A DNA stretch of 63,807 nt, counting the filler, from Basidiobolus meristosporus CBS 931.73 (Eukaryota > Fungi > Basidiobolomycota), in NCBI GenBank assembly GCA_002104905.1. It is 3 parts of 3 records of this genome, joined end to end, with 100 filler letters (N's around TTAATTAATTAA, not from the genome) between each part and the next. Parts side by side here need not be neighbours in the genome. Positions count along the whole stretch, not along the records: positions 1 to 29,352 come from MCFE01000868.1; 2 more parts are not named here. One strand, given 5' to 3'. Made by a program: the position numbers and the translations under genes. Shown here one piece after another: positions 2,127-17,406 of this stretch (position 1 is the first letter of the stretch; each line of letters begins with the position of its first letter). Under the pieces are notes generated by a model. That model did not search any database. It saw nothing but the letters and a program-made list of their open reading frames with translations, and had not been told where the DNA came from.

Positions 2127-3332
2127 GCTTTCTAAAATATTATACAACAGATAGACAAGAACCAAAGATTAAGGCTAGGGAGGATTCGCCAAGTATTATA
2201 ATTTCAAGAACCAAAGGTGACTAGGCGGATTCTCCCAAACCCTTCAAGTACTCGCAAAATTGACTGAGATCAGGTGTAACAAAATGTCGTATAATTTCAT
2301 AATTCAGCGTTCTTGGCCAATGATATGCTGGCTATTCAAACATTTTTACCTATCCACTGCCACATATAGAAATTTCGTCTTATGAGAAGCTTTTAATAAT
2401 TTGAAGTGCTGGGGTTGGTTCCAATTTCGTCCGCAAAGGATAAATGGATGCTCACTATATCACGTAGTCAATGAATAGCCCAGATCCTCAAAACTGAACA
2501 TCGCGCCTAGAAGGTACTTATATAAGGGATATATCTGGTTGAAAACAACACAAATCAAGATGAACAATATATTTACATTTTATGGTGAACATCCCCTTCA
2601 TATGCGTGACTTCCAAGTGTCACATCGAACTGAAGGCATTTTCGATGGGGTTTACTTAGCCACGATTGTATATCTAGTGGCCAACGTCCCTAGCCTGAAA
2701 TAGAAGAATTCCAACCATTGGTAACTCGATTTTTGGCATATTCGATGGGCAACAATTCTTCCAAGCATCTTATCCTTAATAAGAAACTTGGGCTAACAAG
2801 GAGACAAAGGAAATATCGAAGTTCCTGATTTCCAACATCCCATATGATTCACTTTGGTTTATTGGACAAATAACCTAAGCACTCAAATTGCCCCAACCTT
2901 ATATTATGTGACGGCTTCGTGATTAACTTTAACCTCGTTAGAATTTTGGGAAATTGGATGGACTTATTGATACTCCTTGACATAAATGGAGTGAAGGCCT
3001 AAAACAGTAGGCTGGAGAAAATCTATATTGGAACACCACTATTATACATAGATTAATCTACCGATGGGGGCATAGTGATATTGATTTGGTTAAGCTGCTT
3101 AAAAAGTGTTGAAGTTAACGCACAAGGGTTAGATCGTAACCAAAAGCCAACAAAATATCACATAGCAATAAACCATACCACTTCAAACAAATATTAAGCA
3201 CTTTACCTTTGGATACTTAAAACGTATGCTGTCAGATTAGGTGATGTTGTATGTGGGTCAAATTACTTGATGAGATGAAAATGATTTATTTGAATTGAAT
3301 GCCGAGGATACCATTTCTGATGCAGTGTGGTT

Positions 3333-3791
3333 TTAGTTGCTCTTTGACTGAGCATATTGCTTTCGAATGTGCTCATTGATGAAGTATCTGGAGAGCGTTT
3401 CTTCGGAAAGATATTTTGCACCCTTGATCTCGCCAATGCATTGGCTCGAGTTGCAAATGCAGCTGAATTGCTCGACCATGTCCCATTCACTGGATGGATA
3501 GAAGAAAGTGAGCTCGTCACCTTCCTGGATGTCCTTGACCGCAACAGTAAGCATACGGGCGGTATCGAAATTGAGACTTGGATCACAGCTGTGGTTACAG
3601 TAAACCAAGTCATTAGTTAATTCGATGTGTTGGTCCTGGCCTACTTGAACTGTATGGTAGAAAACACCAGCGATGGGCTTTCCCTCCAAGGGATGCACAA
3701 CACTTCCCTTCTTGAAATCACGGGTAGCTACAAGCTTGAGGGAGCGAGCAATATCCTTACCGCTGGGAACAATCTTATATGGTACTAGCAT
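3333..3791 (-). CDS. Small stand-alone SET-domain methyltransferase with post-SET Cys motif (152 aa, intronless)
   Basis: SET motifs NHSCDP and GDELTFFY, followed by post-SET CICNSSQC (CxC-x4-C). ATG at 3791. Confidence 0.88.
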   Translation of the reverse strand: MLVPYKIVPSGKDIARSLKLVATRDFKKGSVVHPLEGKPIAGVFYHTVQVGQDQHIELTNDLVYCNHSCDPSLNFDTARMLTVAVKDIQEGDELTFFYPSSEWDMVEQFSCICNSSQCIGEIKGAKYLSEETLSRYFINEHIRKQYAQSKSN

Positions 3792-5169
3792 AGTCAAGCG
3801 GAGTGTTAGTCGATGTATGGAGAAGCAGACTTCTGTTTGATATGCTTACGTTGGGTATCGGCCATCATGAGAGTGTAATAGAGCGTCTGTGTCAAGCTTT
3901 CACGCTGACTTCCTACGAAAGGTCGCCTTTATTCATATTTTCTTTTGAATATCACTCACGTGAGAGTCGGTGTCAAGGAAGATTCAACCAAGTTTGCACT
4001 CGATCTCTGGTCTGTTGATTGATTCAAAAAAGACGTCACATCTCTATTCCAAAGGTGTTAGCGAAATTGCCGAAAACTCACTTGAATGTGAGAAATTCGG
4101 GTTGAATTCCTTCAACAAGAATCTCCATATTTGGGTAGTGGATGGTACCTGGCAATGGTGATTGCGTAATTTGAGAAATAAATGTCGTTCGTGTATTGCG
4201 CAGCGGTGTACCCTGACAACCAGTTATAGTGGACCCTGTGGTTTATGATTTGATAATTAGATGCATTTCAGAGCGAAATGGCGGATAAATCAATGGTCAT
4301 TCAGGAAATCACACTGATTGAGAGCCGAAGAGGAAGAAAGCTGGACAGAGTGCCAAGAATCCTGATTTATTCCAGTCGAACGTAGATTATCATATGCTTG
4401 CTTTTGGTATCCGTTCCCGGATTATCAGCCATTATGCATTGGCTCCTAATCTCCTCCTTCGTGTCCGAATTCTACTGCTTGTGCTTCATCATATTACGTT
4501 TTTGTAATAGGTTGACAAGTAGCCCTTCGAGGTGAAACTAGGATCTGTAATGATGCTTGCACCAAGCATAGGCATGTCTATTAAGGAAGCCCCATTCCTT
4601 GTTTAGGCTCGGCTTCAGGAAGAGGTACTGTGGGGTATGAATTCTAGTGTGCAGGAATAACATGTTCGAGGAACAAGGATCCTCTCTCAAATGCCGGGAT
4701 TGAAGCAACGTGAATCAACAGGGTTTCGTATGGCCCATTGTATACAATCTAATATCTAGTTTCAGGTAGCTACCATTGCTTTTTTTGGAATGTTGAAAAC
4801 GTGGAAAGCCAGGGTGAAGTATACAAAACCAAGGAAAGTTTCTCAAACATAAGATGGCCTCGTGGCGAAAAGTGTGGAGCATCCATGTATGGAGGGCTTA
4901 AATGAAGCAAAAATGCAGCGGCCATAATTTTCAGTGGCCATATGCATCTTCAGACAGCTCACAGCATTCTACCCATCCAAGCGATGGTTTCAGATAGAGT
5001 CAGTCTTTAGGAGCATGCAACAGAGTGCTTTATTCAATGCATTGCGACATCAGGTCAGAGGCTTTAAATATATACCCCTCGCATCCATGTTGTCTGCCTG
5101 ACTTCTTTGTAAAGAAGCCTATCGTCTCATTTAGTTGTCGGCAAACCATAGCAGAATTTCTACGGAAAA

Positions 5170-11943: not shown

Positions 11944-13775
11944 CTTGGGTAGCTTTTTCACAACCACATCGTTAATGATCCATGTTACATATCGACAGGT
12001 GCCAAAGCGTAGCAATGTTTCTAATCATCTTGAAATCCATTAATAAAATCAACTATCCTATATATACATATCTTTAATAGAAACGGGAAACATCTGAAAT
12101 TGAAGAATATCCATAGCCACAAATTCATGGCGATTTGGTTTTCTCGAGAACTCGAATTAGAAAAGATCGCTAGTGGTTATCATTGCATTTCATAATTTGA
12201 GATCATCCATACCTTCCGGCGCTAGATAGAGTACGACTCGCTAACCAGTATTTACAAGTACGTGATGTCAATTTTAGATTGCTTGCAGACTATCATCAGA
12301 CTCGAAATTGTGGAGCCAACGCATGCTATTATCACAGTGGCTGCCATCAAACATGGTGGTGGCCTTAGACACTAAGTACTTTCTCAAACCGTCTAGGTAG
12401 CTGCTTCGTTATCACCAAAATCCAGGTGGCTTTCACTATCTACATTACTGGACACGTGAGGTAGAATAATATAAGATGACCACATTAGGGTCTTGATTGA
12501 ATTCTTGCGCATGTGCCTCAATAGTAGGATTCTTACAAATCAGTACTTGCATCTATCCAATCTTGTGAACTCCTCATCATTTCCGCTTAATGGAAGGTTC
12601 CATGTGTTTGGTGCGCGCGAAATTTAGCCTGTACGAAGCTCTGGCGTGGATCATATGATTGCGATATATTCCTCGGCTTTTTCCAAATATGACGAATGTC
12701 GACTGGTCGCAAGGACGTTCGTTTAGAGGATTCGTGTGAAGAAAGTGGTGGGAACTTCCCTTGGGATAGATTGGATTCCTGCGTATCTCCACATCAGTCA
12801 ACTGGTTTGTGGTAAATGACACTCGACCCGTTGAGGCGAATAGTATATTACGTAACGTTTATTCATACGAGGGCGACGTTTATTACTGCAGGTTGGAATT
12901 CGTAAATAACGCTTTTGTAAATAACATGCCTGAAAATCAACACAGTAATTAATACGAAGTTTCTTTCCGATGCTATATGATAAGTAAAATGTCTAAATCA
13001 AAGGTATTGGTGATTGAATTCAAAGTGAATGTGGAAATAGGAGTCTAAAAGCATTCATACCGTGTAGCCGCCTAATCCCTGGGTATCTCCCAGAATTCTT
13101 CATCGCGGCAAGCGAATTGTGTAAACCCCTTACATACAACATAATAGCTGGGATTGAGATTTTCAAAGTGTATTGAGGATGATCCTTGGCAGATGCAATC
13201 CATTGACTGGTCGTCTATGGAAGATGATACTAGATACTGCTAGCTGGTGTTTTTGTTTTCCGTCATCTGCGTAATAGGCCGAACATATAATCCACAACAC
13301 TCGCTGAACCATTGGAGAAAGCCCTCCACATGCATGCCCACTTGGATAAAGATCATCATTGACGCAGATAATAATAAATCCCAGTGGCTGTGATTACCAA
13401 GGGCAAAACCTATTATCGATCTTTTGTACTTTAGCTGGCATAGTAACAACAGAGTGAGAGCATGGATTGCGACTTTCCGAATATGATTCGGAAGCCAGCT
13501 CCCATTGTAGTCTCCCCCGCTTTTGACTTGTCCCCAGATTCTCAAGTTGTTGATTACGACCAATGCAGTAGCCATAATGATCACTGCTATTGAATTGTTT
13601 ACCAGTCAATATATAGATACTGACCATTATTACTGTGCAGGGTACATCCTCATTCATGTTCGGAATTTATGGATTTCCAGGATGAAATAGAGTTTATATA
13701 GTGTGGGATCGCCGTGTCAGCCAGTTCAGACAACAGAGTCCCCATTTCATTAATCACTTCGATTCTGCCATTAGA

Positions 13776-14781
13776 ATGAGTATGCTTCCAAAGCCAGTCA
13801 CTACCCAGGTCAAGCAGCATCCCAGTCTGCCCGATCTGGTTACCTCGTATTTTGTATCTCCTAAAGGCCTTGCTATTTTTCGTGGATTAGCCTGCTCCTA
13901 CGCAATCATTTCCTTTATATGTAACCTGGTGAATTATCGGAATGCCTTGCTACAGTTTTTCACGCAATTCGCCTGCTTGGCCTATGTAGGGTTGATTGGA
14001 TATTTGATGGTAAATTTGCTCCCTCCTTTTGCTGTGATCCCTTGCTACGAATGCATCTGACCACCATGCTTATTGCCACAGATTTCTCTCCGGCTGTCGT
14101 ATCTATATCTCCGAAACCCTAATGATGAGCTCCAAAGTTCTATTATGAGAAACCGTTCTGGTGTTCGCTTTGCTTACTCCCTACTATATGCTACCACTCA
14201 AGTCTTTCATACGGTCATCCCTATCATATATTGGACAGTGATCATGCGTGTTGGGTTTGAGCACAGAGGTGGCTATCAATTCTGGTTGAGCTTATCGCTC
14301 CATGGGGGAAATTTTGTCATCACTCTGATCGAAATGTGCCTGAATAAGGTGCAGGTAAGCTGGACCCAGCTCCCTTTCCTACTCCTTGTTGTGATAATGT
14401 ATTTTGGGCTGTCCTGGATCTACTACACATTGTAAGTACAGGTGCTGTAATTCTGCTACCCCTCACATACTCACTATTATTCTCTATAGCACTGGGCATT
14501 CGTTGTATGCCACGACCAGTGAGCCCAATGTCTACAGCGCTCTTATCATGCGATACGCTCTGGTACTTGGGATCTTTGTTGTGGTATTCGTTGTTATATA
14601 TGGCCTTCATAAGGTGCGGACTAGCCTGGGTAAAAATTTGGAAGAGAGCGATGTGCAGACTGAGGTGATTATCGTGGAAGACTTTCCTACAGAGCCCAAA
14701 CCAGCCTCGCTCAGCAATCGATCAGTCTTTCCACCAGCTAGTCAGGCACAAGCATTCAGCCATATCTTGACCTTTTTTTAA
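13776..14781 (+). CDS. Multi-pass membrane protein, FAR-17a/AIG1/rolling-stone-like, 3 exons
   Basis: Exons 13776-14009, 14082-14431 and 14490-14781 with GT-AG introns of 72 and 58 bp. About 6 TM helices, with Thr (FFTQF) and His (LSLHGGN) at positions typical of that family. Family call is from motif memory. Confidence 0.65.
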
Positions 14782-15419: not shown

Positions 15420-16473
15420 ATGCTTCAAGCCATTTTTAAGACGCGTATGTATAGTAGAGAACCACACTACTTGATTACCCTCCAACGTTTCCATATTAAC
15501 GTAAAAGGATTTCTCCCATCTTATCTATCTAGGGCCAATCCTCCTACGCGTCAACCTCACCTTTATCAAGACCCCATTCACTGCATCTCGCCAGCTTAGC
15601 GAAAAGATCTCCTGTCCGGACCCCGACGAATTTGTCAAAAGAAATTCTTGGAGAAAGAAGGCACTTAAAACCCAGCCAAAGGGAAAACGCATTCTTCGAA
15701 AATGGACCGAGGAAGACCGTGAAAACCTGCTCTATGCCGTCAACAAGTATGGAAAACGTTGGAGCTTTATAGCCGGCACATTTTTCTCGGACAGAAGCCC
15801 GAATTCGTGCTACCAGATGTATCTGAACTTGAAAAGCTCTTACAAGAAGGGACCTTGGACCGATGAGGAAGACGAAAGCTTGAAAACTCTATCGTCGATG
15901 GAACAATATACCGGCCAGTGGAAAATCATTTCCGAGGCATTAAATCGCTCTCCTGCAAGCTGCTATCATCGGTGGCATACCCGGTTCAAACCGGACATCA
16001 AGACCGGTCGCTGGACGGAAGAGGAGGATATGGCTCTTTTGGAAGGTGTGAAAAAGTACGGACGGGATTGGGAGAAGATTGTGAAGGATATCCCAGGAAG
16101 ATCAGGCAGACATGCATTACTTCGATACGACAAATTTATTTGCCCGAACACAAACCGCGGTAAATGGACTCCGGAAGAAGATCAACTGATTCTACAAGAG
16201 TTTGAAAAGCACGGCAGAAGTTGGACCAAGATTGCTGAATCAATCCCCAATAGAACGCCTTTTCAGGTTCAAGCAAGATACGACACCAATGTAAATCCAA
16301 AGATCAAAAAAGGCCGTTGGACACCAGAGGAAAGCGACCGTTTGCTTGAATTAGTTGCAAAGTATGGCCATGACTGGACACGTGTGTCACAAGAACTTGC
16401 TACCAAGAGCAACATGCAAGCCCTTCTTCGCTACAACTATCTACGCAGCAAACAGAAAAAGGAAGCCAATTAG
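15420..16473 (+). CDS. Five-repeat Myb protein with a presequence-like N-terminus, 2 exons
   Basis: Exon 15420-15444, intron 15445-15532 (GTATGT...TAG), exon 15533-16473. Five W-T-x-E-E-D...W...(W/Y) Myb repeats. The ORF track starts only at repeat 2. Confidence 0.88.
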
Positions 16474-17043
16474 AATAGGCTTTTATCAGAAAACGGTCCT
16501 CACTGGTTATACTAACCTCTTGCATATTCGATAAATCTGACGATACACCATTTCTTTAGAATAAATGTTTATACAATGGTACTATTTTGGCGTGGACTAG
16601 AGCTGATCTAAAACGTTTACCATTAAGAACACCGTCGTGGCCACTTGCTTTATTCTAATTAAGAGCCTATCGTACCAGCTCGAAAACCTTCCATCCAAGA
16701 AAAGCTATGGATTTGCCTGCTCCATTACCAATTTACCTCAGTGCAACCACTAATTCGAGCACCGTCTATCACTATCCAATAAAATTGTTCATGACACTCT
16801 GTCTTCAAATGAATCCAACACTGAAACGATACAACCAACCTCATCAACTGCAATGGATATGGAAAGATTGTTTATTAATCTTAGCCTCATACTAGCAAAA
16901 CTAAGATCAGAGGCATATGACCAAGAGCTGAGGTAATGTATGTGACAAAGTGCAATACAGATGGAATGATTTTAAAAGAAATTGGCCCTCACCAGCATGC
17001 AATATGCTCTATATATTCGTCTAGAGGTGCACCTCCCTGGCAT

Positions 17044-17406
17044 TTAGAAGTCGTTTTGCTCACGATTGAAACGAGGACGGTCGTTAAAGGTACGAGGAGC
17101 TCTGGGGCGACTTTGAGCTTCGCTGACACGAAGATCGCGTCCATTGAAGCTATGGCCGTTGAGGGACTCAATAGCCTTGGGTGCGGCATCCTCATCGATT
17201 TCGACGAAACCGAAGCCCTTCATACGACCAGAATCGTCAAGAGGAAGGCGAACATTCTCAACTGGACCGTATTGTCCAAACAGATCTTGGAGTTCTTGTT
17301 GACTAGTACCCCAGGGGATGTTACCGACGAAGCAGGTCTTGGTTCCGTAAGCACGAGCCAAGTTTAATGGAAGTGCGTTTCTGGTAAGTCGGGCGAGGGC
17401 GTTCAT
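17044..17406 (-). CDS. Single-RRM RNA-binding protein with a mitochondrial-presequence-like N-terminus
   Basis: RNP2 CFVGNI and RNP1 KGFGFVEI. N-terminus MNALARLTRNALPLNLARAY has no acidic residues and an R-x-Y cleavage-type motif. Basic R/F-rich tail. Confidence 0.9.
   Translation of the reverse strand: MNALARLTRNALPLNLARAYGTKTCFVGNIPWGTSQQELQDLFGQYGPVENVRLPLDDSGRMKGFGFVEIDEDAAPKAIESLNGHSFNGRDLRVSEAQSRPRAPRTFNDRPRFNREQNDF

Follow-up and report, generated by a model that had tools for sequence, protein, structure and literature searches.

The gene at 15420-16473 (+) of the window analysed here, a stretch of 63,807 nucleotides (filler included) from Basidiobolus meristosporus CBS 931.73, is nuclear, has two exons and comes from a Basidiobolus-type fungus; its spliced product (321 aa) carries five tandem Myb repeats behind a basic N-terminus that resembles a mitochondrial presequence. 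Myb proteins are classically nuclear. For this one we hold with moderate confidence that it is imported into mitochondria, and with confidence just above even that, taken as a whole, it is best explained as an imported five-Myb protein that would bind mtDNA as a transcription or replication factor. The features on which the analysis is based are the following (positions count along the window):

15420..15444, + strand: exon 1, 25 nt, with the start codon; 8 1/3 codons, i.e., MLQAIFKT and the first base of R9
15445..15532, + strand: intron, phase 1, 88 nt, with GTATGT donor, TTAAC and TAG acceptor
15533..16473, + strand: exon 2, with the stop codon at 16471-16473; coverage by contigs of runs X1 and X3 is 100%
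15535..15600, + strand: residues 10-31, the remainder of the presequence-like segment, ending in R28-Q-L-S31, an MPP R-3-type motif
15601..15696, + strand: basic disordered linker, residues 32-63, with 10 K/R, pI 10.1 and pLDDT below 50
15697..15849, + strand: Myb repeat 1, residues 64-114, complete, with a W-x-F-I ... F-F-x-x-R signature
15850..16005, + strand: Myb repeat 2, residues 115-166, the one acidic repeat of the five (pI 6.1)
16006..16158, + strand: Myb repeat 3, residues 167-217, with Arg at the position equivalent to c-Myb K128
16159..16311, + strand: Myb repeat 4, residues 218-268 (Pfam, AlphaFold2)
16312..16446, + strand: Myb repeat 5, residues 269-313 (Pfam, AlphaFold2)
16447..16470, + strand: basic 8-residue C-terminal tail, directly after repeat 5
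16560..16597, + strand: AATAAA (16560-16565), then the probable transcript 3' end at 16597, where the X3 contig ends

An in-frame stop lies nine codons 5' of the ATG at 15420, the unspliced reading from this ATG closes at 15599, and the frame of exon 2 is shut upstream of 15520, with its earliest internal ATG at 15817. Because the unspliced frame stops and the exon 2 frame is closed upstream, the 15445-15532 intron is needed for repeat 1 and the N-terminus to have a start codon. In this intron, the branch-like TTAAC is located 33 nt ahead of the TAG acceptor. A preliminary description of this DNA had proposed the 88-bp intron together with a 31-residue N-terminus containing five K/R, zero D/E and an R-x-x-S end, all of which the spliced translation bears out.

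Expression was assessed from sequencing contigs. A 1065-nt contig of run X3 spans from the first base of exon 2 (15533) to 16597 and ends approximately 32 nt past the AATAAA, and no X3 sequence matched upstream of 15533; total sequence amounted to 27 Mb in X3 vs. 113 Mb in the genomic run X1. Such a pattern is as expected for, and suggestive of, a transcript-derived contig broken at the splice branch and ending at the poly(A) site. It is evidence for expression and for use of the acceptor that stays short of proof, X3 being labelled 'DNA?' and contigs being unable to prove ends. In X4, a more distant relative with an 88% identical exon 2, the interval of exon 1 and intron is replaced by 126 unalignable letters. 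A second contig matched window positions 16088-16137 (50 nt of repeat 3, the GRSGRHALLRY region) with 7 differences and at approximately 3-4x higher depth in both X1 and X3, which indicates at least one further paralogue, of higher word depth, in the same genome.

The closest proteins among the matches listed were P0002 (324 aa, 64%) and P0003 (326 aa, 61%) of B. ranarum and P0005 of B. meristosporus. The upstream neighbour of the Myb gene (13755-14781, +) is a multi-exon gene with no Pfam domain, and its counterpart adjoins the Myb gene at locus L002 of B. ranarum (2791-3817) and at locus L003 of B. meristosporus (2637-3598); since this neighbour is syntenic, P0003 and P0005 are positional orthologues. 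A homologous ATG with a 24-25-nt exon followed by GTAAGT was found in the two copies at B. ranarum L001, at L002 and at B. meristosporus L003. In three B. ranarum copies (two in tandem at L001, and L002), a 25-nt exon 1 and an 81-nt GTAAGT…TAG intron occur at identical position and phase, and exon 2 carries on with the same N-terminal motif as in the window protein (M-L ... R14-V ... F19-x-K21 ... F24-T), which is kept between species at 42% identity, whereas the linker after it diverges. At L003 (4347-5405), exon 2 is an unbroken ORF that from residue 10 onwards runs collinear with the window. The deposited P0005 treats part of Myb repeat 1 as intron and starts with an unrelated N-terminus; this deposited model is evidently wrong. 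The exon 1 homologue at L003 has 24 nt, not 25, by which the spliced frame breaks, and the unspliced reading from ATG 4347 is open into exon 2; this is due either to an error in the assembly or to a change in the lineage.

Basidiobolus has many paralogues of the multi-Myb gene, both tandem and dispersed. Two B. ranarum loci carry the gene in tandem duplicate (L001, 283-1230 and 1842-2897; L002, 4805-5684 and 6001-7062), and the upstream L002 copy is split into several frames, i.e., it is a decaying copy. The deposited P0004, corresponding to the upstream L001 copy, begins at a Met within the ORF and does not include the conserved exon 1. In the multi-Myb family, the 5' ends of gene models are frequently incorrect, as in the deposited B. 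meristosporus model and some of B. ranarum.

In the 321-aa protein, Pfam recognised PF13921 (1.2e-64) and PF00249 (1.2e-62) in five stretches each, and AlphaFold2 (11-sequence alignment) modelled five three-helix bundles with pLDDT about 90, so that the five tandem repeats first read from the sequence are confirmed by profile and model alike; the array has the hallmark of Myb/SANT proteins, tandem three-helix units of ~51 residues whose aromatic residues are evenly spaced. The N-terminal ~60 residues are disordered in the model, and the pTM of 0.41 is as expected of repeats arranged like beads on a string. Compared with c-Myb and 3R-Myb (PDB 1h88, 1mse), fold and repeat spacing are the same and identity is ~35% per repeat, but there are five repeats instead of three, and neither a transactivation nor a negative-regulatory domain; that the protein has no activation domain, as remarked previously, is true yet uninformative. 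The further claim that its recognition helices lack the base-reading residues of c-Myb held only in part: the equivalents of K182/N183/N186 are L/L/D, Q/A/D, and L/L/N, but repeat 3 retains in the alignment an Arg at the K128-equivalent position. The missing K/N pattern is in any case not diagnostic and no argument against DNA binding, because the DNA-binding SNAPC4 also lacks it.

SNAPC4 was the best match in a sequence search of solved structures (E 2.8e-29 to 3e-28, 102-105 bits), collinear over Rh-Ra-Rb-Rc-Rd, with c-Myb reaching 9e-27 and 97 bits from three repeats only. Foldseek retrieved DNA-bound SNAPC4, c-Myb, Reb1-Ter and Trichomonas Myb2/3, and every ligand-bound structural relative touches double-stranded DNA via helix 3. 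SNAPC4 (SNAP190; 4.5 repeats; PDB 7xur, 7zwc, 9fso), which reads a long DNA site, is thus the best match in both sequence and fold, and shares with the window protein a collinear array of approximately five Myb repeats with helix-3 residues unlike those of c-Myb. This top, collinear match would be accounted for if the protein were the Basidiobolus SNAPC4 orthologue, the promoter-recognising subunit of the snRNA-activating complex, a reading that was rejected as very improbable. Its 102-105 bits are barely above the c-Myb score, and none of the 63 residues ahead of repeat 1 align to SNAPC4, while a control fungal-type SNAPC4 (P0256) aligns to residues 85-516 of the human protein at 1e-55, pre-Myb region included; SNAPC4 85-270 has no counterpart in the window protein. 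The SNAPC4 region upstream of the Myb domain binds SNAPC1/SNAPC3/SNAPC5, and the window protein has neither an N-terminal SNAPC1/3-binding region nor the long C-terminus. Its N-terminus is basic and acid-free, in contrast to the acidic one of SNAPC4, and its first repeat is complete, not half: on a five-repeat profile built from collinear short homologues it fills positions 1-252, whereas SNAPC4-type proteins start at positions 17-21 (half a repeat).

A tree was computed from all fetched proteins with ≥ 85% coverage of this profile (53 rows). In it, proteins of SNAPC4 architecture, with a long acidic N-terminal region, form an 11-row clade (SH-aLRT 99), and the window protein falls outside, in a different clade, that of Basidiobolus (support 99). 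The non-SNAPC4 groups are poorly resolved among themselves, and the tree is therefore silent on a single origin of the presequence. We place the window protein, by its sequence, among the multi-Myb proteins of non-Dikarya fungi, a family with members in Mucorales, Umbelopsis, Endogonales, Glomeromycotina, Calcarisporiella, Neoconidiobolus, Paraphysoderma, and Quaeritorhiza; no Dikarya orthologues were found among the named matches listed. Repeat 1, the least canonical of the five, found its best match in repeat 1 of proteins from Lichtheimia, Diversispora, Rhizophagus, Geosiphon, Jimgerdemannia and Paraphysoderma, and of B. ranarum P0210, which suggests orthology of this short-protein subgroup. 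Such per-repeat matching is informative for repeat 1 only, repeats 2-5 picking the most canonical repeat of each target. A protein-atlas feature search gave generic Myb clusters only, with scores below 0.85.

The N-terminus itself was examined by presequence criteria that are heuristic. Residues 1-31 contain K7, R9, R14, K21 and R28, and zero D/E, and they fit the composition of presequences (15-60 residues, acid-free and net positive, with many hydrophobic and hydroxylated residues); the acid-free length of 31 residues compares with a median of 6 among 244 Myb homologues. K7, R14, K21 and R28 are heptad-spaced and lie at 180-240 degrees on a helical wheel, with a maximum hydrophobic moment of 0.52. 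R28-Q-L|S31 fits an R-3 motif, which the B. ranarum orthologues do not retain. P10 and P23 break up the segment, beta-branched and aromatic residues are many, and AlphaFold2 places no helix there, so the presequence of the window protein is less canonical than those of Mucorales. A signal peptide was considered and rejected, the hydrophobic stretch being broken by K7, R9, R14, N16 and K21.

The linker that follows (residues 32-63) fits a bipartite-NLS pattern, KR-x12-KGKRI, which the preliminary description had not mentioned, and it may leave room for nuclear or dual targeting. Targeting predictions are known to give false positives for DNA-binding proteins whose N-termini are basic. The protein could be an ordinary nuclear, sequence-specific Myb factor, a lineage-specific offshoot of the SNAPC4/3R-Myb group whose N-terminus is no signal and which would enter the nucleus via the basic linker. 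We consider this rather unlikely, yet several observations agree with it: all characterised multi-repeat Myb proteins are nuclear, SNAPC4 and c-Myb are the top matches in sequence and fold, the linker matches the NLS pattern, the presequence departs from the canonical type and forms no helix in the AlphaFold2 model, and Basidiobolus paralogues are many, as in transcription-factor families. What it leaves unexplained is the recurrence of acid-free basic leaders in deeply separated lineages despite sequence divergence, their R-x-F/Y ends at the first repeat, and their total lack in the nuclear SNAPC4 clade.

Presequence-like N-termini right before the first repeat were found in Mucor, Umbelopsis, Syncephalastrum, Blakeslea, Circinella, Spinellus, Lichtheimia and B. 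ranarum P0210 and P0157, and further ones in Paraphysoderma, Calcarisporiella, Ambispora, Diversispora, Neoconidiobolus, Jimgerdemannia, Paraglomus and Quaeritorhiza. They occur on long forms with ~7-10 repeats (560-690 aa; Mucor, Blakeslea, Circinella, Spinellus, Syncephalastrum, Umbelopsis) as well as on short forms with 4-5 repeats (~260-400 aa; Lichtheimia P0266 with 311 aa, Jimgerdemannia, Paraglomus, Paraphysoderma of the Blastocladiomycota, and B. ranarum P0157 and P0210). Neoconidiobolus P0195 (477 aa) has a leader of the same kind, and in the Glomerales and Diversisporales (Glomeromycotina) the leaders are hydrophobic-basic with one or two acidic residues. Two expectations raised before the analysis thus turned out as anticipated, namely that homologues in early-diverging fungi keep a presequence (presequence-like leaders are present in the Mucorales orthogroup and in other lineages) and that they vary in repeat number (short 5-repeat and long 7-10-repeat forms). 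Lichtheimia ramosa has both a long (P0412, 627 aa) and a short (P0266) presequence-bearing multi-Myb protein, therefore at least two distinct subfamilies coexist in Mucorales.

The sets compared were picked by profile coverage or whole-protein similarity, independently of how their N-termini look. In the 53-row set, net charge of the first 25 residues averaged -3.9 in the SNAPC4 rows (n = 11), which as the closest nuclear relatives have acidic N-termini, vs. +2.2 in the others (n = 42; Mann-Whitney p 8e-6, rows not independent), and these 25 residues were acid-free in 19/42 non-SNAPC4 rows vs. 0/11 SNAPC4 rows (Fisher p 0.004, rows phylogenetically non-independent). At least 8 deep lineages contribute to the 42 non-SNAPC4 rows. 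The Mucorales orthogroup, retrieved with the whole Mucor protein by similarity alone, comprised 45 proteins among the matches listed, and 24 of these models passed a strict test (M start, ≥ 25 acid-free residues, ≥ 3 K/R); most of the other models have a shorter acid-free basic leader (~15-25 residues) running directly into W-x-P-W-E-D, and the remainder are truncated or over-extended. Mucorales leaders commonly finish with R-x-F-(I/A/S)-(H/S), an Arg -2/-3 type context, and across non-Dikarya relatives they often end with R-x-F/Y/L just ahead of the first repeat, while a strict R-x-[FYL]-[SA] motif, present in 11/37 relatives vs. 2/13, is poorly discriminating and missing in the B. ranarum orthologues. 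Leader sequences are very different between genera with composition retained, and conserved composition with drifting sequence is the usual evolutionary signature of presequences. Taken together, the comparative evidence favours reading the N-terminus as a presequence. A red algal protein, P0209 of Galdieria phlegrea (375 aa), has ~5 collinear Myb repeats, and its basic N-terminus is free of acidic residues over 46 residues and carries R-Q-Y-S at position 31; multi-Myb proteins targeted to organelles may thus occur outside fungi as well.

Dual targeting, in which the presequence would send one part of the protein pool to mitochondria while the NLS-like linker sends the other part to the nucleus, with gene expression in the two compartments possibly coupled, appears improbable to us. 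Both types of signal are found in one polypeptide, and the weak, non-canonical presequence would fit, as is typical of dually localised proteins, but the Mucorales relatives have no linker and their presequence abuts the first repeat.

Returning to mitochondrial import, residues 1 to ~31 would act as a matrix-targeting presequence (acid-free, basic, partly amphipathic), which the processing peptidase probably cuts near R28-Q-L|S31. The mature part, with ~290 residues and a basic pI of 9.6, would be a flexible string of five Myb three-helix bundles, most likely reading a 15-25-bp double-stranded mtDNA site in the major groove through successive recognition helices, like SNAPC4 and c-Myb/Reb1. 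It could thereby confer sequence specificity on mitochondrial transcription or replication (promoter selection, or polar termination and fork pausing), whether by giving specificity to the phage-type mitochondrial RNA polymerase or by acting as a polar terminator or fork barrier. Import, the cleavage site, DNA over RNA as ligand and the process affected are what we infer from the features above. The protein may also bind RNA, given that a second surface for nucleic acids is reported for Cdc5-type Myb domains (PDB 6jui).

A functional precedent for the proposed role exists in Reb1, Nsi1, TTF-I and Rtf1 (PDB 5eyb), which use Myb repeats for polar, sequence-specific polymerase arrest and match structurally. 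These proteins are nuclear (rDNA), consist of two canonical repeats plus Myb-associated domains, and have weak sequence similarity to the window protein (E 1.6e-8). The mTERF and PPR proteins, nuclear-encoded, presequence-bearing arrays of alpha-helical repeats that act on organellar nucleic acids and vary in repeat number between paralogues, resemble it in another way; the fold is unrelated and without a Pfam match (mTERF motifs, PF02536, gave none in the 321-aa protein at E up to 1), and the likeness that we propose would be functional only. In animals and plants, mTERF and PPR are well-known providers of sequence specificity in mitochondrial transcription, termination and replication, and fungal factors outside yeast are poorly known. 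Fungi are reported to lack mTERF (PMC3414458), so that its role is vacant there.

The window is otherwise ordinary fungal nuclear DNA, with genes for CorA, SCAMP, a BED finger, an amino-acid permease, an RRM protein, isocitrate lyase and cyclin, and a GC content of 36-49% in 1-kb windows. The convergent neighbour of the Myb gene (17044-17406, -) encodes a 120-aa single-RRM protein (PF00076, 4e-20) whose first ~23 residues, MNALARLTRNALPLNLARAYGTK, are presequence-like too, and it may be a small mitochondrial RNA-binding protein.

In the full-text literature searched (subscription literature lay outside its coverage), no mitochondrial Myb-repeat protein, fungal or other, was found, and searches of the literature for Myb in Mucoromycota, 5R-MYB or Basidiobolus mtDNA returned nothing relevant. 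In databases the orthologues appear only as 'hypothetical', 'Homeodomain-like' or 'Myb-like'. The Myb fold is thus known, while the conserved uncharacterised family and, in a sequence-based reading of its localisation, an unreported compartment would be new.

Tentatively, and as a possibility somewhat below even, we suggest that non-Dikarya fungi have an unrecognised class of nuclear-encoded, imported multi-Myb proteins, in short 5-repeat and long 7-10-repeat forms, as sequence-specific DNA-binding regulators of mtDNA transcription or replication, with the window gene as the Basidiobolus member and its paralogues having diversified towards different mtDNA (or mt-RNA) targets, as in the PPR and mTERF expansions. 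If this is true, a nuclear Myb DNA-reading module placed behind a presequence would represent a new solution for mitochondrial sequence specificity. It would also provide testable candidate mtDNA regulators for Mucorales, among which Mucor and Rhizopus are genetically tractable, for arbuscular mycorrhizal fungi, and for Basidiobolus.
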